Below the pieces are notes generated by a model that ran no database searches, was not told the origin of the DNA, and worked only from the letters and a program-made list of their open reading frames with translations. The translations under genes and the position numbers were made by a program. From the IMG/VR virus record IMGVR_UViG_3300026518_000006, positions 124,001-188,000 of that record: DNA of 64,000 nt, one strand, 5' to 3'. The first letter of the stretch is position 1, and each line of letters starts with the position of its first letter. This document shows positions 1,313 to 52,620 of this stretch, piece after piece.

Positions 1313-1342
1313 AGCTAAATCTCCCTATATATTTAATGAGAG

Positions 1343-4573: not shown

Positions 4574-4670
4574 ATAGCCTCTTTAGTTAAGTATTTTGAT
4601 TGTATTATATAGTGGTAATTTGAAGCAAGTCTTAAAACCTATACTTTAGTACATCAAAAAGAAAGAAAAC

Positions 4671-5360
4671 CTAAACCTTTTTTAATCTGTCTACTATTAT
4701 ATTATCCATTTTGATTTTATTGTACTTCTTCATCTCATCAAAATATATATTTATTTTTTCTTTTTCAGCGGGATTGTCTATATTAGTGTATATCTCTTTT
4801 AATATATTATATTTTTCTTCCAATTTTTTATCATACTGCATCATAAAATACATAAAACTATAGCTCGTTTTCTTTTCCAGTAAAAATTTTTCTATTCTTT
4901 CTCTTAATTCAAGCGGAGTATTTTTTGAGCCGTACTCTCCGAATATATAATTTAACAGTATAGCACTATCACTGACATATCTCTTAGGTTTAGTTAGAAA
5001 GTATTCTATGTCTTTAGTGAGCTGTGTTTTTTCTTCTTCTGTGAGTTTATCTTGATTTCTTGTTTTGATGTTCATAGTCATCTCAAACACTGCATTTGGG
5101 TACAACTTCTCTATTTGTTCTTTGTGTTCTTCTATGAATTTCAGAGCATCTTCGTAGGTATTTCTTGCCTGTTCTACAACATATTCGATAGTGAAATTTT
5201 CTTTTAGCTCTTCAGTTTCGTGGTTACACTTGTTGTCAAAAGGATTAAATGGGTTGTGAATACCTATTTTTTTAAGAAAACAGTCATATTTGGCTATCAG
5301 TGGTTTAAAAGGAGTTAATAAAAATTTTGTAATTTGTATAATCTGTTCAAGCATAATCAC
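4671..5360 (-). CDS. Hypothetical protein
   Basis: 229-aa ORF on the coding strand. Confidence 0.6.
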   Translation of the reverse strand: MIMLEQIIQITKFLLTPFKPLIAKYDCFLKKIGIHNPFNPFDNKCNHETEELKENFTIEYVVEQARNTYEDALKFIEEHKEQIEKLYPNAVFEMTMNIKTRNQDKLTEEEKTQLTKDIEYFLTKPKRYVSDSAILLNYIFGEYGSKNTPLELRERIEKFLLEKKTSYSFMYFMMQYDKKLEEKYNILKEIYTNIDNPAEKEKINIYFDEMKKYNKIKMDNIIVDRLKKV

Positions 5361-5392
5361 TCTGTTTTTGATTACTTATAAAAGTTAGAAAT

Positions 5393-5408
5393 GGGTGCCG
5401 AAGCACCC
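5393..5408 (-). terminator. Intrinsic terminator with UUCG tetraloop
   Basis: GGGUGC-UUCG-GCACCC followed by a U-rich tract after the SPFH gene. Confidence 0.75.
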
Positions 5409-5419
5409 CAAACTAACCT

Positions 5420-6802
5420 TTACAGGTCATTCATTAATTTAAGGTTTGCTAAATCTTCAAGGGTTGTTTTTCCTTTGGAATCTACACCATTGTTGATGAT
5501 GACTTTATCAGGCATTTGAACAAGACCTTTTCCGTTTTTCATAGCCTCATATTTAGCTAAGTTCGTGATTTTCTTAACCTCAAGCTCCAAAATATCTTTA
5601 CGAACAGCTTCATATTTAGCTTTTTTGATTTGCGCTTCAGCAAGTCCGATATGTAGTTTGGCTTCAGCTTGATATTTAGTCGCAATTTCATTTGCCTTTT
5701 GAATAGCTTGGTTGTCTTTGGCAATCTGAAGCTCTTTCTTTTTATCAATAACCGCAAGTTTAGCCAATTTTTGTCGGTCTACAATCTCCTTTTCAGCTTT
5801 TAGTTTTGCTACTTTGACCTCTTTTTTACGCTCAATGATTTCAGCATCCGCTTTGATAAGTCTTTCTTGTTCTGCCTTTTCACGCATAGCTTGACCTTTT
5901 AGTTTAGCGGTCTTGATGTCTTCTTTTGCGTTATCTTGCTCTTGTACACTCAAGATTTTTTTAGCAACTGCTGACTTTTTAGCCACAAGAAGCTTTTCAA
6001 GAAGTGGCTCAGGAATAGGGTCAGCAAGATTTACCTGAAGTACCTTAATGCCATATTTTTCGAAAGGATTTGATGTTCTGATGATTTTGCCGTCCTTATC
6101 ACGCTTTGGCACAGCTTTCCATACCGTTACAGCTTGCTCTACAGGTTTTCCTGTAGTTTTGTCAACACCAATATCAAGTCGCCCTTTTGTAGCTTGTTCA
6201 ACCACTACTCTCTTACGCTCAGTTACATAAACGCCATTATTAACTTGGTCTTCGATTGCAGATTTAAGACCGTTTAAACCACCTTGAGTTACTTCTTCAG
6301 CTGTAAATTGTTGAGCAGTGTTGGTCGCAACATCAATCATTGTTTTTTGGTAAAGTGAATTTACCAAGTTTCTATATGAGCGAAATGATTTATCAACCAT
6401 CAAAATATGCTCGTCATCGGTAGGAAGCACAAATCTTGCTGTTAGTGGAAGTTTTGCTTCGTATGTATCTGCAAATCTAATATCGATAGGTGTATTGACC
6501 GATGTAAATTTCCCTTTATCGCCACCGTCATTTGTAAACGCTACAGTAGTATCATCCTTATAAGTTCTTTCTGTACCAATCAGAATTGGACTAAAATACC
6601 AATCAGGACCGTGATATACTGTTGTTGTACCTGTAGCTTTGTTTTGATAAACATCTGTATACCCTAGTTCTACGGTACGAAACATCGATGACACTATCAG
6701 CACCGCTATTACACTCAATATACCGTAAATACTATACTTGATGTATTTTTTAAGCGATGATAGCTTTCCTTGTGTTCTACTGTTGTTTAGAATTTCTTCC
6801 AT
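5420..6802 (-). CDS. SPFH/band-7 (prohibitin-like) membrane protein
   Basis: N-terminal TM helix, V..GY..V.Q motif, YGIKVLQVNL, long Ala/Lys/Glu coiled coil. Confidence 0.8.
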   Translation of the reverse strand: MEEILNNSRTQGKLSSLKKYIKYSIYGILSVIAVLIVSSMFRTVELGYTDVYQNKATGTTTVYHGPDWYFSPILIGTERTYKDDTTVAFTNDGGDKGKFTSVNTPIDIRFADTYEAKLPLTARFVLPTDDEHILMVDKSFRSYRNLVNSLYQKTMIDVATNTAQQFTAEEVTQGGLNGLKSAIEDQVNNGVYVTERKRVVVEQATKGRLDIGVDKTTGKPVEQAVTVWKAVPKRDKDGKIIRTSNPFEKYGIKVLQVNLADPIPEPLLEKLLVAKKSAVAKKILSVQEQDNAKEDIKTAKLKGQAMREKAEQERLIKADAEIIERKKEVKVAKLKAEKEIVDRQKLAKLAVIDKKKELQIAKDNQAIQKANEIATKYQAEAKLHIGLAEAQIKKAKYEAVRKDILELEVKKITNLAKYEAMKNGKGLVQMPDKVIINNGVDSKGKTTLEDLANLKLMNDL

Positions 6803-6826
6803 TAGTTTTTTCCTTTGATTTTATCG

Positions 6827-7124
6827 GTACTATATGTACTCATAGAGATGTGACAGCAGAGCGGTACAGTAAACTCACCGACAAGTATAAAACCGTTTCC
6901 CCCTGATTTTATCTATCTTTAAACTTTAAGTCTTGACCTTTAAAATTTTAAACTTTAAGCTTTGAACTTTGAACTTTCATCTTTAAGCTTTAAAGGTTGG
7001 CACATCGCCTATTATTCCTATTTGCTGTAGAATGGATTCAAGTCCATAGATAAGTTCATAATATAGCTTATGAGGGCTGTCGATGTCTTATGTTTCGTCA
7101 CACCTCTATGAGTACATATAGTAC
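6827..7124 (-). ncRNA. Candidate structured RNA with a 28-bp closing stem and an AAAG heptad array
   Basis: Arms 7097-7124 and 6827-6854 pair fully on the minus strand with one G-U pair. Internal hairpins are present, and AAAG repeats at a 7-nt period. Confidence 0.6.
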
Positions 7125-7134
7125 TCTTAGAAGC

Positions 7135-7743
7135 TTATAGCTTGATAGTAGTCGTAGCGTTTGATGTACTTAGTACATAATCGACTTCGTTTTGAAACTC
7201 CATAATCTCGTTTTCAAGGTTATTGATGTATTCACCTAAATTGATTTTATCAAGAAGTTCAGGAGTTCTGAGTTTTAGGTATGTTTCTGTGAAATCTTTG
7301 ATTTTATTCTTGTCCTCAATTCCCTTGAGTTGGTCATCAAGAGCTTCTTGAATCTCATTTTTCAACATTTCAACTTCATTATTAGCACTAGCAAAGTCGT
7401 GCGACAATTTTTGCAGAAGTTGGTCTTTATAATCCATTGTGTCTTTGGTTATAATGGCTTCCGCAACTGTATACTTCTTTCCGCCAATCACCACTTTTGT
7501 TTTCATATTAGAAGCGTTTATGGCACCTTTAATTTTTTCTCTTTGAGCAATGAGGTCTTCAACAGACTGTAAAGAAGATTTAGCCTCATCGGGGTCAAAA
7601 TTTCTTCGTGGTTTACCTGCTACTTGCACACCAACAAAAACATTTTGTCTGATTTTTTTGTTGATTTTTTTGTCAAGAAGTTTAAGTTCATTTAGAGCTT
7701 GTGCGACAGTGATTTCTTTTTCTTTAGTCTTTGATTTACTCAT
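7135..7743 (-). CDS. Coiled-coil protein, possibly DIP1984-like
   Basis: ITVAQALNELKLLDKKI ... EVDYVLSTSNATT pattern. Start set at 7743 from the RBS AAAGGA and a -10 box at 7775-7780. Confidence 0.6.
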   Translation of the reverse strand: MSKSKTKEKEITVAQALNELKLLDKKINKKIRQNVFVGVQVAGKPRRNFDPDEAKSSLQSVEDLIAQREKIKGAINASNMKTKVVIGGKKYTVAEAIITKDTMDYKDQLLQKLSHDFASANNEVEMLKNEIQEALDDQLKGIEDKNKIKDFTETYLKLRTPELLDKINLGEYINNLENEIMEFQNEVDYVLSTSNATTTIKL

Positions 7744-7906: not shown

Positions 7907-8326
7907 TTAGGCAATCTTTCTTGCACAATTCTTCGAATTGTTTTTTTGTGATTTATATTTATCTATAGATTGTCTTATGATATTCCCACCAACCATATGC
8001 AACAAATAAAAGACACCAAGTACATTATAACCAAAATATACTAGTGTAAATAAAACAATACCGTCAAAAACATTATCTAATGTTTTTGGAACACCACCAA
8101 ACTCAAAATCTTCATCTTCTTCGATAATTTTTTTACTTAGGTAATCACCAAAGAAAATAAATAATGTTCCGATAAGTGAAATAGTCCAATAGAAAAATAT
8201 TGCGATATTATTCAAACCGTTGATGTTATATACTTCGCTGATTAAAAAAATCACAAATATTCCTATATTAACAATAATCCATTTTGCGCTTTTTAGTTGT
8301 TTTTTCGTAAAACTCGGTGCCTTCAT
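7907..8326 (-). CDS. Hypothetical membrane protein
   Basis: Several hydrophobic segments. Confidence 0.6.
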   Translation of the reverse strand: MKAPSFTKKQLKSAKWIIVNIGIFVIFLISEVYNINGLNNIAIFFYWTISLIGTLFIFFGDYLSKKIIEEDEDFEFGGVPKTLDNVFDGIVLFTLVYFGYNVLGVFYLLHMVGGNIIRQSIDKYKSQKNNSKNCARKIA

Positions 8327-8598
8327 TATTTAACTCCTGCTTTGATACTGTTTTCACAATCTTTTAATGTTTTTGTGTGGTAGATTGTTTGGATTACCTT
8401 ATACATAAAAGGTTTATCAACAATCTCCCAACAACAATCATCGAACTGATACTTGTGGTCTCTTCTGATGTTTTTATTCGCTCTCATTTTACCTAAAAAC
8501 TTGAATACATAAACATCTTTTTTGCCTCTTGATGTATTGTGCAAAATTTTACCGTTATTATACGCTTCTACAATTTCAGGCTGTGTTAATTTTTTCAT
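8326..8598 (-). CDS. Hypothetical protein
   Basis: ORF coupled to its neighbours. Confidence 0.55.
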   Translation of the reverse strand: MKKLTQPEIVEAYNNGKILHNTSRGKKDVYVFKFLGKMRANKNIRRDHKYQFDDCCWEIVDKPFMYKVIQTIYHTKTLKDCENSIKAGVK

Positions 8599-8624
8599 TA
8601 TTTCTCCTATTATAATTTAGACTA

Positions 8625-8912
8625 TTATATCAAATATTCTTGGTTTTTGTCAAGATATTTTTTGATATGCCATTTTTCCATAAAAAATAAAAATGAACCC
8701 AAAGGGATAACAATAATCCAAAAATAAGATTCAATTTCATCCAACATCTCAAGCATAAAGTCGCTATAAGTTGTATTTTGTGCTAATTTTAATTCATCGA
8801 TTATATACTTTTTATCAGTCCCCCACTCATCAAAAATATCATACTTAATAAACCCAAAAATATTAAATGAAGTAAAATTATTTATCAAAGACTCTGCTCT
8901 ATTTTTAATCAT
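8625..8912 (-). CDS. Hypothetical membrane protein with C-terminal tag QEYLI
   Basis: ORF, one TM segment, terminal motif. Confidence 0.6.
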   Translation of the reverse strand: MIKNRAESLINNFTSFNIFGFIKYDIFDEWGTDKKYIIDELKLAQNTTYSDFMLEMLDEIESYFWIIVIPLGSFLFFMEKWHIKKYLDKNQEYLI

Positions 8913-8921
8913 TATAGTCCT

Positions 8922-9413
8922 TTATTTTATTATAGATATTTTTTTGGTTGGTGATTGTGATAATTTTGTATTATAGTATTCTATTTTAATATCTACAGTA
9001 TCTTTTTTTATAACCGAAATATCATCGTCAGATACAACATATAAAACCTCTTTTGTTTTTGGGTCAAAAACATAAAATTTTAAAATATTATCCTGTTTTT
9101 TATATGTGAAGGGTAGATTTTTAATTGTTATGGGCTCTTTATTTACAGGGGTAAACACTGTATAGTTTATAATAGATACTCCAAAAAACCCCAATATAAA
9201 ATAAAACCTAGCCATATTAGCCGTAAGCCCTTCAGAATCTGTTCTGTGTAGAACAATTACTAAAGATAAAATTAACAGCCCTATTAAAAAAATACCAATA
9301 TCAAAGTCAAAAAAAGAATACACTACCAATACAATAGTAGAGAAGATAAAAAATACCCCTCTCTCTTTAAAAAATAGTAGCCATAAATTTTTCTTATAAC
9401 TTATCCTGTTCAT
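8922..9413 (-). CDS. Hypothetical membrane protein
   Basis: Three hydrophobic segments. Confidence 0.6.
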   Translation of the reverse strand: MNRISYKKNLWLLFFKERGVFFIFSTIVLVVYSFFDFDIGIFLIGLLILSLVIVLHRTDSEGLTANMARFYFILGFFGVSIINYTVFTPVNKEPITIKNLPFTYKKQDNILKFYVFDPKTKEVLYVVSDDDISVIKKDTVDIKIEYYNTKLSQSPTKKISIIK

Positions 9414-9652
9414 TTTACTTTCCTTGTTTGGGGATATTTAATATGAATCCAATTGAAAAATCTTCTTACAAAATAACTTCTCACAAAAGAAACAGCTGTG
9501 AAAATTACCGCTATTTGCGTGTTTCCTGCTACACCGAAATCTACATCATACATAGCAAATACTATAGGTTGTACGACAAATATAGACAACAACAGCCCAA
9601 ATATAAGCCCGAATGTTATCTCGATTATTGACCATTTTTTAGTTTGCACCAT
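9410..9652 (-). CDS. Small two-TM phage membrane protein
   Basis: SIIE...G....Q...F...FT.VS..RSY..RR.FN pattern, which I recall from small phage membrane proteins. Confidence 0.65.
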   Translation of the reverse strand: MVQTKKWSIIEITFGLIFGLLLSIFVVQPIVFAMYDVDFGVAGNTQIAVIFTAVSFVRSYFVRRFFNWIHIKYPQTRKVK

Positions 9653-9658
9653 AACCCC

Positions 9659-9883
9659 TTATATAAAAAATTCTGAGTTTTCTTTTTTAAATTTCTTTAC
9701 AACATAATTGGAATGCTCTACCCAAATATAAATGAAAGGAAATAGTACTATAAAGATAAATACTCGGATTAAACCGTTTTCTAAATACAACTCTTTTGTT
9801 AGTTTTAAATAACTAAAGTCTTTGTTTAATTTTTTTATATCTTTAGCAATTTTAATTTTAGCTTCTATGGGTAAATTATTCAT
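9659..9883 (-). CDS. Hypothetical protein with C-terminal tag SEFFI
   Basis: ORF, terminal motif. Confidence 0.6.
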   Translation of the reverse strand: MNNLPIEAKIKIAKDIKKLNKDFSYLKLTKELYLENGLIRVFIFIVLFPFIYIWVEHSNYVVKKFKKENSEFFI

Positions 9884-15309: not shown

Positions 15310-15782
15310 TAAAATACCTTTTTGGTTTTATTTATAGGTTCAGCAAGTATAAACGAAATAGTCAAGATTCCATTTTCAAGTGTTACATCTACTTCCCCAT
15401 CATATGCTTCTTTTGGGATTAACACCTTTGTTTCAAATGGTTTTTTTTCAAACTGTTTTATGGCGTATACTTCATTCATATCATTTTGTGGCTGTTCGGG
15501 GGTTCCGACAATATATGTGATATAAGAATTATCCTCAGCTTTTAACTCAACACTAATTTCATCTTTTGTAAAACCTGTTGCTTGAACCTCAATAAACATA
15601 TTTTTTTCGCCAATTTTTGAAACATTTATAGACGGCATATTTTTTCTCCATTTTGTTTTATCTAAAGTTTCATCTATGATTTCATCTAATGATTTGTATC
15701 TTTTTGCAGGCAATCCATCTTGGTCTTCGAATATTTTTATACCCCAAGTGTCGAAGAAATCTTCAATAAACTTATCTCTCAT
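15309..15782 (-). CDS. Small heat-shock (Hsp20/alpha-crystallin) protein
   Basis: SINV...IEVQATGFTKDEISVEL...LENGILTISF. Confidence 0.75.
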   Translation of the reverse strand: MRDKFIEDFFDTWGIKIFEDQDGLPAKRYKSLDEIIDETLDKTKWRKNMPSINVSKIGEKNMFIEVQATGFTKDEISVELKAEDNSYITYIVGTPEQPQNDMNEVYAIKQFEKKPFETKVLIPKEAYDGEVDVTLENGILTISFILAEPINKTKKVF

Positions 15783-15863
15783 ATGCTTTCCTTTTAATAT
15801 TTTTATAATTAAGAATTATAACATTAAAAACTTAAACAAACTTTAAAATATTTAGTAGAGCTA

Positions 15864-17321
15864 TTAATACCAATAAAATACTTTATTGCCACTATCAAAA
15901 ATTTGTCTATACCCATTATCGAACATATTTTGAAGTGCTGTTTTGTTTTCATCGAAATCAAAATCCTTAATATCTTTTAATTTATGCTTTTGAAACTTTT
16001 GTCTGCTATACAAGATATATGAATTGTGTTTAAAGAAAAAGAAATTTTTATCAGAATTATGACTAAAGAAAAACCCAAGAGTCTGATATAAATTTCCATC
16101 TGACCATCTTCGATTAGCATATGAAATTAAACTTCGTCCAATATGTTTTTTAAATCTATTTAATAGCTTGGAGGCACCACCTATAACAACTGTGTTCAAT
16201 TTTGTGCAAAACCTAACCAACTCATAATCTGCTTTTTTGTTAAATCTATTTTTAGAAAAAGTCATCACTGAAACCAACTTATTATTATAGAACAGCCCGT
16301 AATTTATCGAAGAGTGACTTCCGCCTTGCAGGTGATTATCTTCACAAAAATAAAAAGCATCTTTAGAACTAATCTCTTTAATTTCTGTATCTCTTGCATA
16401 TATTCTGTTATCAGTCTTATTTAGTCTATTTTTTATTACACTCTTCCACTTTTCTTTATTAAGAATCCACTCATTTTCAAAAATGTGTAAAAGTTGTATT
16501 CCGTTTTCTTCACAGACATCAGTTTTATGTTTATGTTTATTGGGGTTGAAATGATTTAAATTGTTCGGAAATGTTGACCCTTTTGAATGAAAGGTCAATC
16601 CATCGTATTCGATGGCTAAATTATATTCAGGTATGTATATGTCCAACTCAAAACCCAAGTGCATATCTCTTTCTATAATATTCTCTACCCCTATATCGGA
16701 TAGAAAGGATATAATCTCTTTCTCTGCATTAGATTGTTTATTGGAACATTTTGAACATCCTTGACCATTTAGATGAGCGTTTGGTTCCATTAAAAACTTT
16801 CCGTGAGTTGGACACAATATCTCAATTTTTTCTTTGCTATGTTTATATTCACTCACATATTGGTATTTGTACTGATGTTTTTTATTAAAATCTTCTACTG
16901 CTTGATTGTGGTCTTTTTTTGAATGATTGTTTCTTATAAGGTTGGCACATTTTGGACACCCAGACCCATTTTTATGGTTTTTGGGTGTCGGAAAAAAACT
17001 ACCGTGTATTTTACAAGTTACTTCGACAGGTGTTTTCATATTAATAAAATTTACTTTATCGTATGAGTATTTTTCACCGTGTACTTTTTTAAATTGTTCG
17101 ATTACGGTTTCAGTGGTGTACTTAGAGGATTTGTTGCATTTGCTACAACCTGCTCCTCTCATATGATGGTTTGGAGTCTGAGGAAACTCCCCGTGTATAG
17201 GACATATTATAATCATTGGGGTGCGGGTGTCCACTATACTATCTTCAATATATGTGTATTTATTATTGTGCTTTTCATGACACTTATTTAGTATTTCGGT
17301 TTTTGATAATTTCTTACTCAT
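15864..17321 (-). mobile_element. Hef-like homing endonuclease
   Basis: Three CPxHG..HxxGxGCxKC repeats, ELDIYIP..LAIEYDG..H nuclease motif, and C-terminal ELVRF..GGASKL domain. Confidence 0.8.
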
Positions 17322-17355
17322 TTTATATTATAGCATTATTGATATTAATTCAAAA

Positions 17356-18477
17356 TTAATCAAAAGCACCACTATTAATTTTTCGCATAGCATCAAAAGC
17401 TACATCAGGGTCATATGAACTCATATTTTGAAGCATACGGTCTTTCGTATAATCATCACTGCCATCATCAAACCCACCATCTGTGTCTAATAATGAATAA
17501 TAATCTGCTGTTTTTACACCATCTTCATCTTCTTCAGTATCTAAATCTATATTCTTTCTTAATACATCTAAAAATAAATCAAAATCATCAAACGCTTTTA
17601 TGTGCATAAATGGGGCAAAAATAATAGCTAAACTCATTATCATATCATCGTGATAGCCCTCTTCAGCTTCATATTTTTTCTTCACATTATCGCTTTTAAT
17701 GAAGTTAAAAAATTCGTTGATAGTATCTCTGTCTTGAACTATTAATTTCCCCTCTTCTATAAAAATCTTCAACATATTGATAATAAGAGGTCTTGATTTT
17801 ACAGTAGTTCTAAATCCGTAATATTTTTTATATTTTTTGTCTCCGTCATCTCTATCCCGATACATATTTGGATATTCGTAGTTGAGGTATAAAATATCGG
17901 CTACACTTTGTCCTGCACCTTCATTATTTTCGATAACTAAAAAAGCTTCATTATAATAAAGCCCTAATGTTTCAATATATTCAGGCATAACAAGATAATC
18001 TACATCTAATTTAGCTGAAGCAACCTGTATAAATGGAAATTTTGTAATATCAACCACTTGAATACTAAAACTATCTATCCCTTCTTTTGATGGGTCAATA
18101 CCAATGATGTAATTATGTCCTTTTATAGGTTTTTCATAAATATTAATCCCGCTGAATATGGTATCTTTAGCGACAGGTTCTTGTGGCACCATTAACTTCA
18201 ATCTTTCTGTACTAATCAGTGTTGAGGCAGAGCCAAGAAATTCACACGCCTCTGTTTGTGCGAAGAATTGTGCTCCATTTCTTGCTATTGTTTGTTTCTT
18301 GTACTCTTGAGGGGATAAAGGATTTCCTTTTTTATCAAAATGAGGAACTTCAGTCCAACTCGCTGTTACCAATCGGTGCCCGCTTTTGGACTTAAAAATA
18401 TTATATTTTACTGTATATGTCCCGTCAGGGTTTTTAATTATCTCTTTAATATCATTTATAGATTTTATTTTAAGCAT
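17356..18477 (-). CDS. gp17: Large terminase fragment 4 (nuclease domain)
   Basis: CEFLGSASTLI, IIGIDPS, IENN, HDDMIMSLAI. Confidence 0.92.
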   Translation of the reverse strand: MLKIKSINDIKEIIKNPDGTYTVKYNIFKSKSGHRLVTASWTEVPHFDKKGNPLSPQEYKKQTIARNGAQFFAQTEACEFLGSASTLISTERLKLMVPQEPVAKDTIFSGINIYEKPIKGHNYIIGIDPSKEGIDSFSIQVVDITKFPFIQVASAKLDVDYLVMPEYIETLGLYYNEAFLVIENNEGAGQSVADILYLNYEYPNMYRDRDDGDKKYKKYYGFRTTVKSRPLIINMLKIFIEEGKLIVQDRDTINEFFNFIKSDNVKKKYEAEEGYHDDMIMSLAIIFAPFMHIKAFDDFDLFLDVLRKNIDLDTEEDEDGVKTADYYSLLDTDGGFDDGSDDYTKDRMLQNMSSYDPDVAFDAMRKINSGAFD

Positions 18478-19100
18478 TATTCAACATCCATTATAATAGG
18501 GTGACGCTCTATAGTATGAAATTCTTTATAAATTTCTTCCAACGAAAATTCACCTAAAGCATCAATTTCGATTGTATCATCTTCAGACAACACAACTTCT
18601 TCGTCTTTAAAATTGATATTTTTAGCACCCTCCACTAGTTGAAAAAAGTGGTTCATACCATTAGCTGTAGAAGTGTTTATAACCTGTTTAAATATCAATG
18701 AGTTCATAGTAGGTATTACAGCATCGATAAAGTCATCCCAATCTTTTGATTTTATATAACCCGCTTCGTCAGTGTAGATAATATTGCAATTATGAGACTC
18801 AATCATATTTGTTGTATATGTGTGCCCCCTTACACCCACAACATCATAAAACTCAAAAGCCCCCTCTTTGTGAGTAATATTTTTTATTACACCATTGGAT
18901 ATTTTATCACCAACTTTTAAATTTTTGGCTTGTCTAAAAATTTTTCCTGATTTTGATTTTCCTACTAATAATCTATGGTCTTCGGTACATTTTAAACTAC
19001 TATTGTCAGTTTCAATATAGTAAAGTATTTTTTTATTAATTCGTCTAACTGTTTCAAAATCTTCATACCCTCTCTCAGTTTTTATCATATAATCGTTCAT
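18477..19100 (-). CDS. gp17: Large terminase fragment 3: IntC2 (104 aa, 18789-19100) plus Walker B and coupling motif
   Basis: CTEDH block B, ends ESHN|CNIIYTDEAG, STANGMNHF. Confidence 0.9.
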   Translation of the reverse strand: MNDYMIKTERGYEDFETVRRINKKILYYIETDNSSLKCTEDHRLLVGKSKSGKIFRQAKNLKVGDKISNGVIKNITHKEGAFEFYDVVGVRGHTYTTNMIESHNCNIIYTDEAGYIKSKDWDDFIDAVIPTMNSLIFKQVINTSTANGMNHFFQLVEGAKNINFKDEEVVLSEDDTIEIDALGEFSLEEIYKEFHTIERHPIIMDVE

Positions 19101-19971
19101 AAAAAGCTCCTATTAGATTTTCTTTTGTTATAGATGATTTCCAATTTTTAGATGAATTTAATTCTGATGGCAACATCTCTAAATTAATGATATTTCCTAT
19201 TATATAAGGAGGGATACCTTCCTTAAACCCCATAATTTTTGAAAATTTATGGTCTATATTATAAAAACCTTTTCCTCTCCCTCTTTTGTTATAGTTCGTC
19301 AAGGTATATAAATCTTGAGCTTTAGTTACTTTATCCACTTCTCTACAGTATAATTCATAATCTGAGAGTTCACTTTCTTTTACCCAAAGTCCGTTAATTT
19401 CCTTTAATTTTCTATAATTTTTTACTCTACATTTTATTTTCCCACAAGTAGGTCTATACCCTTGTCCATATGATAAATATTTTCTTGGTTTACAACAATA
19501 TTCACATTTTGGCTCTTCTTTCATATCATTCATAAATAAATATATATTTTTAGATATATTATTTGTTATTTTAGGTATAGAACCATAGATATCCATTATT
19601 AACTGATTTTTATTATGGTAGTTATCGGGTTTTATTTTGGATATGTAATTTTTAAGGTCATTTACGGATTTATCGAGTTTATTTTCAAGTTTCGGTGCAT
19701 TTAAATCATCCATTTGGCATTTGTGTGAGCAATATTTAGCATAACCATCTGATATATTTTTAAATTTTGTTTTTGCACCACATTTACATATTGGGGGTAT
19801 TAAAATGTTATGTTTTATAATATATAGCAACTCATTCAATTTATTTGTAGTTGGTGGAATTTTTGCATTTTCTAATAATTTTTGATAGTGAATTTTATAG
19901 AACTCAGATTTTGATGTTAATTTTCCAAAGCTTTCAAACTCTAACAACTCAATAATTGACAGTTCTTTCAT
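19075..19971 (-). mobile_element. Free-standing HNH homing endonuclease with Zn-ribbon repeats
   Basis: NIDHKFS...NLEML..LNSSKN motif and two PxC..C..F..GY..C repeats. Lies between IntN2 and IntC2. Confidence 0.75.
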
Positions 19972-20659
19972 ATAACTCTTTTATAGTAATTTTTTCTTCT
20001 TTTAATGTTTTTTTATTTATAACTTCTACCGTAGTATCAGGAGATACACAAGTATATCCACGAAAGCTGTCACTTGATGGGCTGTCTGTCATAATCCTTG
20101 TGCCGTTTTCAAACTCGATATTTGATTTGTTCCACACCGATATCCCATTCATAAGCCATATTGGAAGCTCTAAGAAAACCTTTTTAATTTTATCCAATAC
20201 TTCACGGGCTGTGGACGGTTTATTGGCTACAATCCCAATATTTATAGCAGTATCGTGAAACATAGCTCTCCACAACAGATAGTTGCCCACTGTAACCGTA
20301 TTATGGCTAAGAATATCATTAGTGTAATAAAGATTATCCCCACTAACACTTAAATCATACATTTCTTCTGAGTACCCTAAATCTATTACTTTCGTTACTT
20401 TTGAATCGCCTTTTTTTGTATTTAAGATTTTTCCTAAACTATTTTTTGCAAATACTTCTTGAAAGTCATTAGTAATTAAAATATGGTCATCAGCACACTT
20501 TATTTTTAGTCCATTTTGCAGGTGCACTTCATATAATCTGTATTTAACAGTTTTATTAGTTTTAGTTATATCTCTCCAACCATCGTGGCTTTCGACTTGC
20601 CAATCATTGACATCAAATTGTTCTGTAAATTTTCGGTTTATTTTATCTGATAGTTTCAT
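19949..20659 (-). CDS. gp17: Large terminase fragment 2: IntC1 (120 aa), 83-aa extein, IntN2 (33 aa)
   Basis: CADDH block B, LSHN|TVTVGN...DSFRGYT|CVSPDTTVEV. Confidence 0.92.
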   Translation of the reverse strand: MKLSDKINRKFTEQFDVNDWQVESHDGWRDITKTNKTVKYRLYEVHLQNGLKIKCADDHILITNDFQEVFAKNSLGKILNTKKGDSKVTKVIDLGYSEEMYDLSVSGDNLYYTNDILSHNTVTVGNYLLWRAMFHDTAINIGIVANKPSTAREVLDKIKKVFLELPIWLMNGISVWNKSNIEFENGTRIMTDSPSSDSFRGYTCVSPDTTVEVINKKTLKEEKITIKELYERTVNY

Positions 20660-21918
20660 TATTTTAGCCCATATTTATTTTTAAAATTTGTAGTGAAATT
20701 TTCCAAATCTTTTTTATTTATTTTTAATATGTTTTGTAATATATCTTCATCAAAACATTCAGTAGAAGAAAAATGATTATACTTCTTCGTTACTCTATTA
20801 TTCTTCGATAAAATATATTGCTCTTTATAGAAAGCTTTATCGTAAGGCATTTTCTCTGTATAGATAACATTATATGATAATCCGTTTTTGACTTCAAATA
20901 TTGACTGACTCCCCCACCTTGATATAATTCCTTGAGATGTTATGCCTATTTTATAAAAAACATCTCTTGAATTATAAAACTTAATATAATAAAGAATAGT
21001 TTCTGTATTTTTTGCCCAATAGTTTTTCTTTCTTATCAAATCTATACTCCATCCTATGTGCTCACCTTTCCCTTTATCTCTATTAATTCTCTCTAATTCT
21101 TCTTTTGGTTTTGATTGTAGAGTTTTTTGCCACTTTTGTTGTCTTTGATTAAATATAATTAATCCTTCTTCACCATATCTCTCAATACATTTCTCTAAAG
21201 AAAAAGTGCTTTGTCGTTCTGATAATAATCTTTTAGCTTCATTTTCATTATAACCTCGTTTTAAATAATACTCTAAAGTACAATCATTATTACCATTTTC
21301 CTTATTCGATTTCGATATTTTAGAATGAACTTCATTTATTTTTTGCTGTTTTTCTTCCTCTGTTAAACCTTGATATTTTATAAAGTTTTTAGAGCCACTT
21401 GAATACTTTCCACCGTGATTTTTGGCAGGATTATTATCTGAAGTGAACCCCTTTACTTGTTTGTCAATATTATGTAGTCCATATCGTACAATAGTTCCTA
21501 ATAGTCCATTTGATTTCTTTACATTTAATATATATCGTTGTCTTTCAAGGAACTTTGTTTTCATCCCATCAGATATAAACTTAGCAAAATTATCTATCTT
21601 CATATATTCGCCTTTATTTAAATAATATAGGCACTTTTTTAACTCTCTGAATTGAGATAATGTAGGAAATTTATTTAAGTTACTATAAAAGGATTTTTGA
21701 TTGAATAACCACCTTAAATCTTTTTCTTTATATGGTTTACCTTTGTTATCCAATTTAATTTTCAATTTAATTTTCAATTTATCTATTTCATTTTTATGAA
21801 CTAAATTAGTTGTTTTATTATAAGGAATGTATTCAACTTCTGAAAAGTCTATATATGGTATTTTTGAAACTCTTATATAGTTTGGCGAATAATGAAGTCT
21901 TCTGTTTACTTTGCTCAT
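20659..21918 (-). mobile_element. Free-standing homing endonuclease, GIY-YIG/T5orf172-like C-terminal domain
   Basis: LYYIKF...FYKIGIT....R...EQ motif and RYGEEG repeat. Lies between IntN1 and IntC1. Confidence 0.7.
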
Positions 21919-22480
21919 TTATCATTTCGTGGAATTCACCAATCGGCATTTTCACTAATTCTCCTGTGTGTTTGTTTTTTATATTTATAATAGTTGAAAA
22001 GTCGTTGCATTTACCGCTCTGTCTCGGATAAAGTACAACTAAATCCTCTAAACTCAGGAGCTCATCTTCTAAAAATACTTGGTATCTTCTTGGTTCAGGT
22101 CTTGCCAATCCTGTTTTTGTAGTGATGAAACAATAATTACTTCTGAAATATTTAAATGATTTCTTACACTTTTCTATTTCTATTTTGTGCAGAGTATTTA
22201 AATCTAATTCAGTTTTTTCACGCTTTAAAACACGAATACCATTGTATGATATTTTATTGCCGTATTTATCGGTATAATAACCATTTTCATTTCTTGGAGG
22301 TGTTAATAATAACAACAAGCCATCGTGTTCTTCAGGAGTCCAATCATAGGTATTCTGCACAAATTTTAAAAATGTTTTTTCCTCTAATAATTGGTCTAAT
22401 AAATCATAGATGTATTCATCTTCAGTGAGGTCTTTTACTTTAGTCAGTAGTTTTCTGTATTTTTTATCTAAATTAGTCAT
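21833..22480 (-). CDS. gp17: Large terminase fragment 1: N-terminus to Walker A plus short IntN1 (from 22009)
   Basis: EIEKCKKSFKYF..NY, RRYQ, PRQSGK|CNDFSTIINI. Confidence 0.9.
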   Translation of the reverse strand: MTNLDKKYRKLLTKVKDLTEDEYIYDLLDQLLEEKTFLKFVQNTYDWTPEEHDGLLLLLTPPRNENGYYTDKYGNKISYNGIRVLKREKTELDLNTLHKIEIEKCKKSFKYFRSNYCFITTKTGLARPEPRRYQVFLEDELLSLEDLVVLYPRQSGKCNDFSTIINIKNKHTGELVKMPIGEFHEMINEQSKQKTSLFAKLYKSFKNTIYRLFRS

Positions 22481-22539
22481 ATATTATTTATATTGTAATG
22501 GATATTCTATATCATAAAGTAAAATAGGAGTAGTTTAAA

Positions 22540-22578
22540 AGATTTTACTTTTTAAAAAAGTAAAATCTTTTAAAGAGG
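22540..22578. repeat. Palindromic intergenic element, copy 2
   Basis: AGATTTTACTTTTTAAAAAAGTAAAATCTTTTAAAGAGG. Confidence 0.85.
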
Positions 22579-22585
22579 TTGTATA

Positions 22586-22933
22586 TTAGAATTTGTTTGT
22601 GGTTTTTTCAAGCTTTTTGATTGTAGTTTTTAAGCTCTTTTCAAAAGCACTTAATGCTTGGGCTATTTCTGATGAAGCTTTTTTCATAATCTCAGTGTAT
22701 TGCTTTTCGATTTCAAGCCAATCTTTTTCATCATACTCAGCTTTGGTAGCTTCTACCGATTTTATTTTCGGTAAAAGCGAACTACCTGATACTCTGAAGC
22801 CCATAAGATTGTTGTTGGCTTCTTTTTCTATGAATACATTTACTAACTCACCGAATACAGACAGCCCATTATAATTACCATCAGCCTCTATTCTTTCATT
22901 TAGTACTGCTTCAAATATCTCTCTAAATTCCAT
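22586..22933 (-). CDS. Late protein, possible internal head protein
   Basis: TATAAATA at 22956-22963, N-terminus MEFREIFEAVLNE. Confidence 0.55.
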   Translation of the reverse strand: MEFREIFEAVLNERIEADGNYNGLSVFGELVNVFIEKEANNNLMGFRVSGSSLLPKIKSVEATKAEYDEKDWLEIEKQYTEIMKKASSEIAQALSAFEKSLKTTIKKLEKTTNKF

Positions 22934-22989
22934 AGTACGCCTTATATGTTTTAATTATTTATAAAACAAGCGTTCTATTGTAAAATCTG

Positions 22990-23328
22990 TTATCTATATC
23001 GAACTAACCCGTCTTCCAACATTTCATTAAGATAGGTGCCACCATTATAAAATATTGAAATGAAATCAATAGAGCCGTCATCATTCTCCACAATACTATT
23101 ATAATATGATGGGTCGAATTTTTCAACATCTTCTTTTTGATATAAAATATCATCAATAACAATATACTCATCACTATTTTCTCTGATATCTTCTACATAT
23201 GTTGCACTATACTCACTTTTCTCAATACTATTTTCTTCGTAAATTCTTTTACAAGTTTCTTCGATATCTTCATAACCGTCCACTTCTACAGGAACCAATC
23301 TACCTTTATATCCTACTGTTTCGCTCAT
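22990..23328 (-). CDS. Acidic hypothetical protein
   Basis: ORF with RBS. Confidence 0.6.
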   Translation of the reverse strand: MSETVGYKGRLVPVEVDGYEDIEETCKRIYEENSIEKSEYSATYVEDIRENSDEYIVIDDILYQKEDVEKFDPSYYNSIVENDDGSIDFISIFYNGGTYLNEMLEDGLVRYR

Positions 23329-30885: not shown

Positions 30886-31800
30886 TTAAATATTGGGTAG
30901 AGTGACTTCTTTAGTTAAAATGGGGTGTCCTTCTGATACATAGTACATTTCTCTTTCATAAAAGTGTTTTAAACTATAGGTGTCTTTAACATAAGTGAAC
31001 ACATCTACTAAATCAAAAACATATACATTATCACCTTTTTCTTTATGTAACCTCATAATTCTACCCATAGCTTGAAGTACTAGAGTATATGATTTTGTTG
31101 AGCTCAAAAACACAAGGTTCTTTAGTCTTGGGATGTTGATACCTGTACTCAAAACATTATATTGTCCTATTACAATAGCATTCTCACAAGTATTAAGGTA
31201 AAGTCTAATCTGCTCTCTAACACTTGATTTTGTGTTTCCACTCATAAAGAAAACATTGTGTTTTTTCATAAACTCAAAGTCAGATTTTCTTTTATTGGTA
31301 AGCTTCTCACCTGTTAAACTTTCAAAAGTATCTTCCCCGTGTGCAGTGACAGCGTATAAGGCTACTGTAACCCCTTTAAGTTTTTCTAAAAACTGTTTTA
31401 CAAACAACTGTCTTGATTTGCTTTCTCTTATGAATTTTGTTTCTTCCTGATACTTCATACCACTTTTGGTTTGGTTTCGTGGATGTGTTAAGAAAATAGC
31501 CATAATAGTTGTGTCTGTTAATAAGCCCATCTCAATTAGTTGTCTTGCATTAACAATTCTTTCGGGTTTTCCCAATGCTTGCTCTAATAACATAGCATCT
31601 TCTTCTATGATAGGCATAGAGCCAGTCATACCCAATTTTATCTCACAAGGTTGCTTTAATATAGACTGAAGTACTTCAGCTTTAGCTTGGTGACAATTAG
31701 ACACTAAAATGTTATTGGCATAATAATTGTGGTTGTTTTCTATATGTAAATTATAAGTATCACCTTGAAACTCAACCTTTTTTATGGACTTTATCTTCAT
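30886..31800 (-). CDS. uvsW: UvsW helicase C-terminal fragment (35-aa IntC at 31696-31800 plus extein)
   Basis: MKIKSIKKV...ILVSN|CHQAK, GMTGS, STGINIP, QAMGRIMR. Confidence 0.92.
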   Translation of the reverse strand: MKIKSIKKVEFQGDTYNLHIENNHNYYANNILVSNCHQAKAEVLQSILKQPCEIKLGMTGSMPIIEEDAMLLEQALGKPERIVNARQLIEMGLLTDTTIMAIFLTHPRNQTKSGMKYQEETKFIRESKSRQLFVKQFLEKLKGVTVALYAVTAHGEDTFESLTGEKLTNKRKSDFEFMKKHNVFFMSGNTKSSVREQIRLYLNTCENAIVIGQYNVLSTGINIPRLKNLVFLSSTKSYTLVLQAMGRIMRLHKEKGDNVYVFDLVDVFTYVKDTYSLKHFYEREMYYVSEGHPILTKEVTLPNI

Positions 31801-32857
31801 TCTTACCCTTTAGTTTTTCCAATTTTTGTATCGCATTTGTTACTTTATCGGTATTTTCATCATCCAATTTAATATTAGCGAATAACTCTTTTATATTGCT
31901 TAAATTTTTAATCAGATAATCCTCTGTTATAATTTTATATGAGTAATTATTTTCTTCACACCAAACCAAAGCACTATCTTCTTTTGCTATATTTCGAGCA
32001 TTGAGTATTAGTGATTTTGGTTTTATTTCGAATATTATATTATGTTTGTTATCTGTAAAATCCACAATATATGTGTGTATACTATCTTCAAATAAATATG
32101 GTATTCTAGTGGTTTCATATAGTGTATTTGGGTTCAACAAATAAAACATAAATTCCCAAGAGCTCCTAAAATTAAAATTGCCAAATTTTATTCTGCTTCT
32201 CGACCAAGAGTTGGTAATACACGGGGTAAATTCTCCGCTTGCAATTTTTGATTTCATTATTATAGAGTTATGTTTGGCTATCTTCTTTTTTGTCTCTTTT
32301 GACATTTTATGAGCAGGGTTGTTTTTTCTCATCCGCTCAGAACATAATAATTGTCTACATTTTTCATTACAGGTTTTTCTATTCAATGATGAAGATTGTG
32401 CCCTTTTAATTTTATTACCACAATAATCGCAATATAGTGGGTCTATTTCATCAATATATTCTATTCTTGACAATCTAAGCAAGTTCGGAAATTTTAAATC
32501 TGCTCCAACAAAAAGTAAATATTTCATATAATTATCATTATCATCTATAAATGAATATTTAGGGGTAGTTGTTGATTTATACTTTGGTAAATTATTTTTT
32601 AATGTTTCGTATGTAACATTTTCTACAATCCTACCACTATAATCCCAATTTCCAAGAACTAGCTTTAAGTCATAAATGTCATCTTTAAAAGCATTGAATA
32701 TAAAGGCATATTTTATCGTTTTGTTGCCTTTATATTCATAAAAGAGCGTCCTTAAATCTTCACGATATATTAAAATTTGTTTTATTATTTTTGATTTTAA
32801 TGGTTTTGACAGCTTGTTTGGATTAAGTGTTTTTAAATATTTTTTATAATCATCCAT
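31772..32857 (-). mobile_element. Free-standing endonuclease, TnsA-like PD-(D/E)xK domain
   Basis: FRSSWE...YE..IPY...YIVDF...EIKP, with CDYC..C..C and NUMOD3-like segments. Lies between the uvsW IntN and IntC. Confidence 0.75.
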
Positions 32858-32860
32858 ATC

Positions 32861-33817
32861 TTATTTATAGGGCAGAAGCTCATCAGTTAACACCAACTCG
32901 TCTACTCTAACATAACCTCGTTGTGTAAATACCTTATGATTACCTGTGATATATAGCTTTCCGTTATCTGTTTCTATCTCATACATCTGTTCGTTTGATA
33001 TATTTTTATGTGTTTTTAGTACTTGATTGTATTCATTTTGTTTGGTAGTTTCATTGTATGTCATAACTAAATCTCCTTCAGTTATACTGCCGATTGGCAC
33101 ATCTCCATTAATAGTTTTAATCAAAGTATCACCTCTTAGACACTCATCAACCAAGATAGCGTCATATAGTCTTACATCTTTCATAACTTTGTTCAAGCTT
33201 TGCCAAGTGGTGATTATATAGGGTTTATCCAACGCTTTATCATCATTCTCACCACCAATTAGTTTAATACTGTCAAGCATCTCTTTTGGGGCATTGTAAT
33301 CTTTAAAATCTTGGAACATTTGAGATGTTAATCCGATTGTGGGGACTACTAATATAGTCGGGATATCGTGGTCGAAAAAGTATTTTAAAACCAAATAAGC
33401 AACCATTGACTTGCCACCACCTGTGGCAATAATATCCAATTTATTTCTACTTCTAATAAGGCTTAGAAAGCCTTTTAGTTGGTGTTTATAGGGGGTAAAG
33501 GGTAGGGTAGGGATAACGCTTTTCAAGAAGTCTATAGCATCATCACGCTCTAATGGCGGTAATAATTCAACTTTATCGAATTCAATATTTTCTATAAGAC
33601 GCTCTTTAAAACCTTTTTCAACTTTGAAATATTTACCATCTTTATAATTCTGAGCTTGATAAAATCGAGTATATCCATCATCTTTGCCCATTTGAACTCT
33701 AGGTTCGTGCTCTGAATTTAGTCTTTTGGCTCTAAGTAGCTTATCAATCTTGAATACAGTGTCTCTATTATTAGTGAATAGGTTAAGATGATGTTTCGCC
33801 TCATTTAATATTGTCAT
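32861..33817 (-). CDS. uvsW: UvsW helicase N-terminal fragment plus IntN (93 aa, 32864-33142)
   Basis: PYKHQ, ATGGGKS, VVPT, TTWQSL, LVDE|CLRGDT, ITGNHKV block B. Confidence 0.92.
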   Translation of the reverse strand: MTILNEAKHHLNLFTNNRDTVFKIDKLLRAKRLNSEHEPRVQMGKDDGYTRFYQAQNYKDGKYFKVEKGFKERLIENIEFDKVELLPPLERDDAIDFLKSVIPTLPFTPYKHQLKGFLSLIRSRNKLDIIATGGGKSMVAYLVLKYFFDHDIPTILVVPTIGLTSQMFQDFKDYNAPKEMLDSIKLIGGENDDKALDKPYIITTWQSLNKVMKDVRLYDAILVDECLRGDTLIKTINGDVPIGSITEGDLVMTYNETTKQNEYNQVLKTHKNISNEQMYEIETDNGKLYITGNHKVFTQRGYVRVDELVLTDELLPYK

Positions 33818-33827
33818 ATAGTTTCCA

Positions 33828-34040
33828 TTATATTGTGTATTCGGGATTATCCTCAAGCCATTTAATATAAGGCTTTTTTAGTACGATTTCGGTAGACCCT
33901 CTTTTTCGTATATTTCCTTTGATTTTTACTTTATTGTCGATAACATCAGTAACTACACCTTCATTAAACCAGTAGCCGTCTTTGCCTGTGTATAAAACAG
34001 TATCGCCAATCTTTACATTAATCCCGAAATAGTCTTTCAT
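33828..34040 (-). CDS. Small SH3-like protein with tag PEYTI
   Basis: DYFG..VKIGDTV pattern. Confidence 0.6.
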   Translation of the reverse strand: MKDYFGINVKIGDTVLYTGKDGYWFNEGVVTDVIDNKVKIKGNIRKRGSTEIVLKKPYIKWLEDNPEYTI

Positions 34041-52580: not shown

Positions 52581-52620
52581 AGATTTTACTTTTCAAAAAA
52601 GTAAAATCTCTCAAAGAGCC
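52581..52620. repeat. Palindromic intergenic element, copy 4
   Basis: AGATTTTACTTTTCAAAAAAGTAAAATCTCTCAAAGAG between convergent genes. Confidence 0.85.

Follow-up and report, generated by a model that had tools for sequence, protein, structure and literature searches.

How a large environmental phage could obtain a working large terminase (TerL) from a gene that lies in four separate open reading frames, F1 to F4, with endonuclease genes between them, is the question raised by this locus. The locus is on the minus strand of the window, i.e. the whole 64-kb stretch of DNA that was analysed. Judged from sequence, it is very probable that F1 to F3 make up the ATPase-bearing part of TerL, split by two selfish intein-endonuclease elements and trans-spliced to a chain of 343 aa, with F4 left unligated. 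The sequence-only reading of this DNA had described the four-ORF layout, with an IntC1 of 120 aa, a middle extein of 83 aa, an IntN2 of 33 aa and an IntC2 of 104 aa; coordinates and domain matches agree with it, and all of its figures that were open to checking were confirmed (Table 1).

Table 1. Features of the TerL locus in window coordinates; a slash marks an insertion point.
Feature	Position	Strand	Description
F1	21833-22480	minus	215 aa; TerL residues 1-157 ending ..YPRQSGK, then IntN1
F1 N-extein	22010..22480	minus	TerL residues 1-157, ends in Walker A ..RQSGK; from PHROG and intein-free alleles
IntN1	21836..22009	minus	58 aa to stop, starts with Cys1 (Cys158 of F1)
HEG-A	20659..21918	minus	419 aa, between IntN1 and IntC1; phrog_681 endonuclease, E=9e-10
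F2	19949-20659	minus	236 aa; IntC1, 83-aa extein, IntN2
IntC1	20300..20659	minus	F2 residues 1-120; block B His, block F Asp, ends ..LSHN; +1 Thr
Extein 2	20051..20299	minus	F2 residues 121-203, 83 aa, TVTVG...FRGYT
IntN2	19952..20050	minus	F2 residues 204-236, 33 aa, starts CVSPDT (Cys1)
HEG-B	19075..19971	minus	298 aa, HNH-like C-terminus, between IntN2 and IntC2; phrog_5104, phrog_3339
F3	18477-19100	minus	207 aa; IntC2, then extein beginning CNIIYTDEAG
IntC2	18789..19100	minus	F3 residues 1-104; block B TEDH, ends ..ESHN; +1 Cys
Extein 3	18480..18788	minus	103 aa; Walker B (CNIIYTDE), TSTANG motif, clade-specific tail
IntN-like relic	18513..18590	minus	F3 tail (F3 residues 171-196), without Cys1; hhalign
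F4	17356-18477	minus	373 aa; remaining ATPase domain and RNaseH-like nuclease; Terminase_6C (Pfam)
Empty insertion site	18243..18246	minus	..AQTEA/CEFLG..; site of third atypical split intein and Vsr-like endonuclease
Third free-standing HNH-type homing endonuclease	15864..17321	minus	directly downstream of F4; phrog_559, E=7e-138

PHROG large-terminase families match F1, F2, F3 and F4, and the TerL of CP220 aligns colinearly across all four. The features of T4 gp17 are present, namely Walker A, Walker B and the C-motif of the ATPase together with a C-terminal RNaseH-like nuclease, and gp17 structures match; among solved structures, those of the gp41-1 intein, the Cat atypical TerL intein and T4 gp17 come nearest. 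The N-extein of F1 is 100% colinear with intein-free alleles, and extein 2 corresponds to residues ~170-248 of gp17, the interval from Walker A to Walker B. Promoter-like sites at the locus do not exceed shuffled expectation and no minus-strand terminator was found within it; at most, this suggests that the pieces are co-transcribed.

The pieces carry the halves of two inteins, and Pfam Intein_splicing matches F2 and F3. As had been claimed, both inteins are atypically split, because the block B His sits in the IntC (CADDH in IntC1, CTEDH in IntC2); IntN2 has 33 aa, IntN1 ~30-36 aa, and the IntCs of 120 and 104 aa contain block B. Only the first ~30-36 aa of IntN1 are IntN-like, its tail overlapping the start of HEG-A, and the IntN1 of relatives measures 32-36 aa. 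Class-1 splice ends are present (..LSHN/T in intein 1, ..ESHN/C in intein 2), as is the class-1 Cys1 right after each N-extein (Cys158 in F1, Cys204 in F2). Among 36 diverse middle pieces (37-66% identity), the block B His, the block F Asp, LSHN and the Cys204 of IntN2 are invariant, and the block B of IntC1 (ADDH) has an almost invariant Ala at the Thr position, which speaks against the splicing reading. CatC is matched by IntC1 (E=4e-5), as is the gp41-1 intein, and also by IntC2 (PDB 6DSL_B, E=8e-6). The AF2 model of F2 (mean pLDDT 84) has a HINT fold, with the gp41-1, Cat and VidaL inteins and also gp17 as top Foldseek matches; in this model IntN2 forms a strand-strand-helix unit (pLDDT ~88).

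Since three separate genes bear matching intein halves, the ATPase half of TerL would be joined after translation. IntN1 of F1 would complete the near-complete HINT domain of IntC1 in F2, and splicing of intein 1 would join K157 to T, thus restoring Walker A. IntN2 of F2 would likewise complete IntC2 of F3, joining ..FRGYT to CNIIYTDE.. directly before Walker B, and the double trans-splice would yield the chain of 343 aa. The junctions RQSGK-T and FRGYT-CNIIYTDE, first proposed from the letters of the window, recur in four intein-free alleles of 343-346 aa from other metagenomes; these are colinear with the predicted spliced chain, 76-82% identical to it, and carry 16-mers across both junctions that are identical to the predicted spliced sequence. 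The predicted tryptic peptide spanning junction 2 is GYTCNIIYTDEAGYIK.

The three endonuclease ORFs in or beside the gene could also mean that endonuclease insertions have broken the gene, which no longer works and is decaying, the working copy lying elsewhere, and the window covers just 64 kb of a 235.6-kb contig. However, all four pieces are open and free of frameshifts, the exteins retain the 76-82% identity to intein-free alleles, and the catalytic intein residues are invariant in the 36 diverged sequences. The upstream PDDEXK exonuclease and four small ORFs are moreover syntenic with intein-free loci. An intact terminase elsewhere had been named among the observations that would count against the reading; in the 64 kb of the window, tblastn with CP220 TerL, with two metagenomic TerL pieces and with the sequences of F4 and the predicted spliced chain hit this locus alone. 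Decay therefore appears very unlikely.

T4-like phages carry group I introns containing endonucleases, and the ORFs of the window overlap tightly, as might be expected if the interruptions were removed as RNA (group I or II introns with endonuclease ORFs) or by recoding. Against this, Rfam gave no intron match at E<=1 in positions 15500-23000, and a group I/II intron was rejected for want of a recognisable intron RNA core at that threshold. On either side, the interruptions instead have HINT halves in frame, which bear Cys1, block B, and HN followed by a nucleophile. In one relative (L008) the pieces are 50-70 nt apart with no endonuclease, and in another (L016) they are out of genomic order, which puts them beyond repair by RNA cis-splicing. 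Removal as RNA or by recoding is thus extremely unlikely. The source contig is metagenome-derived, so that an assembly artefact or a chimeric contig has also to be weighed, but an independent Logan assembly (SRR33151388, here L007) reproduces F1, HEG-A, F2, F3 and F4 at 97-98% nucleotide identity, and a JGI locus that is 66% identical has the same piece order; the chance of an artefact seems negligible. We infer that F1, F2 and F3 are spliced, and the two-intein ligation with F2 as its middle piece, as put forward in the sequence-only reading, is supported by the intein-free alleles, the invariant residues and the independent assembly.

The boundary between F3 and F4 is of a different kind. 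It consists of a TAATG stop/start overlap without intein residues, kept in the window, L007, L010 and L012. L010-L012, free of both inteins and endonucleases, have ORFs of 346 and 371 aa that overlap in the same way. Given that the break is conserved across the clade, including the intein-free alleles, the mature enzyme would be expected to contain two chains, F4 never being joined; the terminase of this clade would normally consist of two translationally coupled chains. A programmed frameshift at this boundary was considered and rejected, as in L006 the overlap measures 11 nt and the downstream ORF lies in another relative frame. F4 would bind the spliced chain non-covalently, and this contact may be made by the IntN-like relic in the tail of F3, whose hhalign score is 23 as against 7.8 ± 1.6 (maximum 12.5) in 200 column shuffles. 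This tail may be the remains of a dead split intein that now serves as a non-covalent assembly tag holding both terminase chains together. The head of F4 was also considered as an IntC remnant and discarded, its hhalign similarity to IntC not being significant. The split NrdA of Aeromonas phage Aeh1, reportedly an essential enzyme that a mobile element has split and that reassembles without being ligated, offers a model for the F3/F4 break, but here the break is clade-wide and adjoins an IntN-like relic.

Two free-standing endonuclease ORFs, HEG-A and HEG-B, which the sequence-only reading did not mention, lie between the intein halves. No Pfam family was found in either, even at E<=5. The annotated start codon of HEG-A is tentative and the ORF is conserved in L006 and L007, while the core of HEG-B (19187-19884) is deleted in the near-identical L007. 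That locus differs from the window by two clean indels, the missing HEG-B core and an added 1331-nt split intein with its endonuclease. The added element occupies the third site, empty in the window and filled also in L006 and L014, and Vsr-like endonucleases are present in L007, L014 and L015. The intervening homing endonucleases and the clean presence/absence polymorphisms point to invasion by selfish elements: two composite elements, each an atypically split class-1 intein with a free-standing homing endonuclease, would have entered TerL. Such an invasion is a simpler origin than motor control, and nothing was found in support of the earlier suggestion that the ligation controls an essential motor. 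The arrangement reads as homing and tolerance of mobile elements, a role as a regulatory device being unsupported. The locus illustrates the degree of fragmentation by selfish intein-endonuclease elements that an essential phage gene can survive.

Multi-piece TerL is not a one-off but widespread across phage sequences. Middle pieces with an IntC at the start and an IntN at the end make up 79 of the 265 relatives collected, other multi-split loci being L006, L008/L009, L014, L015 and L016; in L006, L007 and L014 TerL is fractured three times, and some loci would need three trans-splices. Lengths and nucleophiles of the atypical TerL inteins are published (PMC11766414). AceL-TerL, GOS-TerL and the consensus intein Cat, all of T4-like terminases, share with those of the window the short IntN (25-37 aa) without block B, the long IntC (104-122 aa), the class-1 mechanism and the TerL host, but they are described as single splits, whereas the window has two inteins in one gene. 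In the full-text literature searched, no natural gene with at least two split inteins was found; the primary descriptions of AceL-TerL, GOS-TerL and Cat may mention one. The IntC chain of Cat ends ..HA/CE, and this C-E context at +1/+2 fits the third site, vacant in the window, where the nuclease domain begins with ../CEF(L/F)GS. The occupied sites of the window are other than this one, at GK/T in Walker A and at RGYT/C before Walker B.

Dassa et al. (2009, PMC2677866) described fractured genes in which a host N-part with its IntN is followed by a free-standing homing endonuclease on the same strand and then by an IntC with the host C-part, and included one terminase locus whose IntC, of 122 aa, is unusual. 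The window likewise has same-strand free-standing endonucleases between the halves, though HEG-A and HEG-B have no Pfam GIY-YIG or Vsr match, and its TerL is fractured twice, giving middle pieces, where each of those loci is fractured in two. The terminase of Campylobacter phage CP21 (HE815464; Firehammervirus), the pieces of which are labelled just 'putative terminase' in the record, has intein 2 at the same site before Walker B and split in the same way, its halves being separated by an endonuclease ORF of 421 aa. It also has a homologous intein at the Walker A loop, but this one is contiguous and inserted three residues earlier (RQ/S), and a third, contiguous intein follows Walker B. Because both of these are contiguous, CP21 needs only one trans-splice and no middle piece.

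The sequence-only reading further held that the two inteins must be strictly orthogonal, or F2 would cyclise or F1 would splice straight to F3, and strict orthogonality seems a reasonable requirement. Engineered tandem trans-splicing, orthogonal sets and SICLOPPS use a middle fragment with IntC first and IntN last (PMC7090010; Shi and Muir 2005, as cited), and share the need to avoid cross-reaction or cyclisation; they are man-made from unrelated inteins, whereas here homologous atypical inteins lie in one essential gene. Mis-pairing to cyclic F2 or the F1-F3 skip product may still occur, since the IntNs share one sequence motif (28% identity between IntN1 and IntN2 in the window, 53% in L006) and IntN1 scores on the IntN2 profile (E=5e-4). 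According to a review, the GOS-TerL IntC accepts the AceL-TerL IntN (PMC11766414), and two further split inteins, one in NrdA and one in the helicase, are co-expressed by the phage of the window. The inteins might then splice without being strictly orthogonal, with cognate pairing favoured kinetically, e.g. through co-translation from one mRNA or extein context, and both side products tolerated. On the other hand, within one genome the IntCs are just 19-30% identical and the IntNs 28-53%, and six of seven Walker A-site IntNs carry an F-H signature, at IntN positions ~26-27, where other sites have L-Y/F. Within F2, proximity would greatly favour cyclisation in cis, and selection against cross-reaction should accordingly be strong, and the 79 middle pieces persist in nature. 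Tolerated mis-pairing seems rather unlikely on balance. That multi-fragment ligation is a recurrent, selected design of T4-like TerL, with mutually orthogonal sets of two to three inteins plus the F3 tail as an assembly tag, is put forward tentatively, at somewhat short of an even chance.

Traceless protein ligation relies mainly on split inteins, and joining more than two pieces needs orthogonal pairs, which are scarce, above all with a short, synthesisable IntN. From our results, tandem trans-splicing in two and three steps, by homologous atypical inteins, seems already to operate in nature on an essential enzyme, and this locus and its relatives provide candidate orthogonal intein sets. Close relatives supply built-in controls, namely intein-free alleles, an endonuclease-deleted copy and a copy with a third intein, by which the avoidance of cross-reaction and cyclisation among closely related split inteins becomes directly testable. 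If the recurrent-design reading is true, the phage sets, which include a middle piece with an extein of just 8 aa in one relative locus, would offer orthogonal short-IntN inteins as a natural toolbox ready for use.

The large terminase (TerL) locus comprises six ORFs in tight succession on the minus strand (17356-22480, boundaries computed exactly), in which neighbouring ORFs overlap by 86, 1, 23, 26 and 1 nt and no minus-strand terminator was found. The recomputed boundaries bear out every piece and intein-half length given by the sequence-only reading, whose description lacked the two endonuclease ORFs between terminase pieces. In the 86-nt overlap of the F1 tail (IntN1) with the start of HEG-A (21833-21918), both frames are kept at the protein level in L006, a locus from another genome (66% identity). 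The HEG-A start codon is uncertain, given that the gene caller set the endonuclease start further downstream in another locus, L007.

Terminase pieces, intein-bearing genes and endonuclease ORFs of the window (slashes in motifs, here and in the text, mark splice or insertion sites)
Feature	Coordinates	Strand	Description
F1	21833-22480	minus	215 aa; TerL residues 1-157, ending ..YPRQSGK, then Cys-initiated IntN1
HEG-A	20659-21918	minus	419-aa ORF after F1; PHROG endonuclease family match
F2	19949-20659	minus	236 aa; IntC1 (residues 1-120, ends LSHN), 83-aa extein, IntN2 (33 aa, first residues CVSPDT, F2 C-terminus)
HEG-B	19075-19971	minus	298-aa ORF after F2; HNH-like C-terminus; PHROG homing-endonuclease family matches
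F3	18477-19100	minus	207 aa; IntC2 (residues 1-104, ends ESHN), then CNIIYTDEAG...
F4	17356-18477	minus	373 aa; Terminase_6C nuclease domain
Third endonuclease ORF	15864-17321		HNH-type, free-standing, just downstream of F4; phrog_559, E=7e-138
NrdA locus	3-4573	minus	Two more inteins
NrdA ORF	1343-4573	minus	1076 aa; contiguous intein with LAGLIDADG domain, about residues 445-760; C-terminal IntN (..LLATAPN/CQSG..)
ORF after NrdA IntN	392-1312	minus	306 aa; C-terminus Vsr/DUF559-like by eye, no Pfam match
NrdA IntC and C-extein	3-410	minus	..ASHN/TSSG..; continues past window edge
Helicase locus	30886-33856	minus	ResIII/DEAD-type
Helicase ORF, IntN	32861-33856	minus	Ends ..LVDE/CLRGDT..
ORF in helicase locus	31772-32857	minus	361 aa; TnsA-like endonuclease
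Helicase ORF, IntC	30886-31800	minus	IntC first (..ILVSN/CHQ..), then Helicase_C
Homing endonuclease ORF	52620-54179		HNH-type, free-standing; phrog_1314

We infer that F1, F2 and F3 are joined by protein splicing, and the strongest evidence for this predicted joining is, at the sequence level, the comparison with intein-free alleles. Four of these (P0040, P0043, P0045 and P0048; 343-346 aa, from other metagenomes) are colinear with the in-silico spliced chain of 343 aa (76-82% identity), and carry identical 16-residue strings over both junctions, LYPRQSGK-TVTVGNYL and SDSFRGYT-CNIIYTDE. Given these identical junctions in colinear alleles, the inteins are inserted in the P-loop and directly before the Walker B strand, and their removal restores both motifs, as had been proposed. 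The residue following intein 2 is Cys in some intein-free alleles (..RGYTCNII..; the same four) and Ile in others (..RGYTINIL..; P0091, P0080); this Cys may reflect past occupancy by the intein or be needed by the homing site.

In both IntCs the block B His (CADDH in IntC1, CTEDH in IntC2) and block F are present, and the terminal His-Asn precedes a nucleophile, which is Thr after intein 1 and Cys after intein 2; Cys is the first residue of both IntNs. F2 and F3 match Pfam Intein_splicing with scores under the gathering score. Among solved structures, IntC2 matched CatC, the C-fragment of Cat, a consensus atypical TerL intein (6DSL_B, E=8e-6), IntC1 the gp41-1 intein (E=1e-8) and CatC (4e-5), and the F2 extein residues ~170-248 of T4 gp17. 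The best PDB matches of the F2 AF2 model (mean pLDDT 84, input 36 homologues) were the gp41-1, Cat and VidaL inteins, with gp17 after these. Taken together, two atypically split inteins with F2 as a middle piece are confirmed as an observation, and the comparative evidence supports their interpretation.

F2, with an IntC at its front and an IntN at its back, has the geometry of SICLOPPS, and the concern raised earlier about cyclisation or skipping is sound. Were IntN2 to pair with IntC1 in cis, the product would be a cyclised 83-aa extein; pairing of IntN1 with IntC2 would leave F2 out. IntC1 is homologous to IntC2, with only 30% identity, and IntCs within one genome share 19-30%. The IntNs have one common motif, with 28% identity in the window and 53% in L006, and IntN1 gave a weak score on the IntN2 profile (E=5e-4). 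F-H occupies IntN positions ~26-27 in 6/7 Walker A-site IntNs, with L-Y or L-F at other sites, and is a candidate specificity mark. It has been reported that GOS-TerL and AceL-TerL fragments cross-complement (review, PMC11766414). Given selection, strict orthogonality would be plausible.

The sequence-only reading placed the terminase in four ORFs, with a three-piece double trans-splice. The junction match supports the three-piece splice of F1-F3, and F4 would stay a separate chain: the F3 stop and F4 start overlap as TAATG, and intein residues are absent. The same break, with the same overlap, separates a 346-aa from a 371-aa ORF in three loci that have neither inteins nor endonucleases (L010-L012), and homology searches gave about a dozen more N-terminal pieces (334-348 aa), of which the sequences inspected all end in the same region. 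Compared with T4 gp17 and CP21, an additional ~75 aa stand between ..VEGAK and SG....W, and the break falls within this insertion; in a more distant relative, P0124, the insertion is contiguous. The downstream ORF of L006 is read in another relative frame and overlaps by 11 nt, which speaks against a conserved frameshift. We infer a mature enzyme of two chains, F4 and the spliced 343-aa product, which would be held to each other non-covalently. Residues 171-196, in the F3 tail, look like an IntN without Cys1 (hhalign against the IntN profile, 23; 200 column shuffles, 7.8 +/- 1.6, maximum 12.5), and the similarity of the F4 head to IntC was not significant. Speculatively, a relic of an older, dead split intein could mediate chain association.

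A search with F2 returned many proteins of 230-270 aa covering 94-100% of it, and 36 of them, once aligned, retain the block B His and block F Asp, LSHN and, in the terminal IntN, Cys1. When all 265 collected proteins were sorted by IntC and IntN profiles, 79 were middle pieces, 121 had an N-terminal IntC but lacked a terminal IntN, as a single split would give, and 16 had a terminal IntN only. One class of middle pieces has exteins of 82-108 aa, which start at the Walker A site and end at any of several sites in the Walker B region (RGYT/C, RGxSIx/C, ..LLY/C, ..DE/C); in another (~179-191 aa) they run from the Walker A site to ..QExx/C at the start of the nuclease domain, which appears to be the AceL/GOS/Cat site. 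In P0123 the extein is just 8 residues (CNVVYIDE).

Partner pieces exist, as seen in whole loci (L008/L009, L014, L015 and L016). L008 (3397-6271) and L009, from two independent samples, encode a three-piece terminase in which endonucleases are absent; its middle piece (141 aa) carries the Walker B strand CNVVYIDE as an 8-residue extein between IntC and IntN. A T4-like phage, L014, has four pieces and three split inteins, the third with Ser1 and Cys+1, a rare combination that is reported for GOS-TerL. The second IntC of L014 (8541-9323) ends ..NNIVCQQ/C, not His-Asn, which suggests a C-terminal Gln variant. L015, a 335-kb phage, has three pieces and two Vsr-like endonucleases. In L016 (300-kb contig, 4322-7705) the pieces are out of genomic order: an IntC2-extein-IntN3 piece (IntN3 and IntC3 being the halves of a third intein) comes upstream of the F2-like middle piece that spans Walker A to Walker B, with a 627-aa non-endonuclease, Laminin_G_3-like ORF between the two, and the middle piece is followed by three further large ORFs (687, 702 and 506 aa). 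Neither an N-terminal nor a nuclease piece was located in L016. This order of the pieces is repairable only by protein trans-splicing. The multi-piece terminase is a design that recurs in nature rather than an isolated curiosity.

The window is part of a 235.6-kb IMG/VR contig. Its entire locus recurs at 97-98% nucleotide identity in L007, an independent Logan assembly, with two clean indels as the differences. L007 is without window positions 19187-19884 (the HEG-B core; compared with L007 7178-7328), its IntN2 and IntC2 being intact, and has an additional 1331-nt element (L007 8186-9516) at window 18243-18246, absent from the window. Made up of IntN3, a Vsr/DUF559-like endonuclease and IntC3, this element turns ..AQTEA/CEFLG.. 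in F4 into a third atypical split intein. Set side by side, L007 and the window are a natural before/after record of homing and of endonuclease decay. The order in L006 is the same, with this third split and an extra GIY-YIG gene in addition. No Rfam intron was found at the terminase locus, nor another terminase within the 64-kb window. Mobile intein-endonuclease units would be expected to leave just such presence/absence differences between near-identical genomes; the fragmentation is most simply put down to selfish-element invasion, rather than to control of an essential motor as had been suggested.

Dassa et al. 2009 (PMC2677866) described 'fractured genes' cut in two by a split intein and a free-standing endonuclease, a set that includes one terminase, whose IntC is unusual at 122 aa. 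Of the atypical splits, AceL-TerL, GOS-TerL and Cat have been characterised, single in each case (PMC11766414), in agreement with the background of the earlier reading. In the searchable full-text literature, a scope outside which the primary AceL, GOS and Cat descriptions fall, no report was found of a natural gene with at least two split inteins or of a natural middle piece, and on that scope the multi-split-intein arrangement is unreported so far. The cultured Campylobacter phage CP21 shares split intein 2, together with an endonuclease ORF, but, unlike in the window, its inteins at the Walker A loop and behind Walker B are contiguous; CP220, also cultured, has only the contiguous Walker A intein. 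The CP21 terminase (L001, HE815464, 5485-9771) has its three inteins at RQ/S (contiguous), before Walker B (split, the halves flanking the CP21_126 ORF) and after VVDE/C (contiguous); its 614-aa GTG-initiated ORF (7927-9771) is annotated in part only, as CP21_127.

Elsewhere in the window, the second NrdA intein is a canonical split, and the helicase is also fractured by a canonical split intein. Together with the two in the terminase, this brings the split inteins co-expressed by the phage to at least four. Homing endonucleases are unusually abundant in the genome, another free-standing one being phrog_1314.
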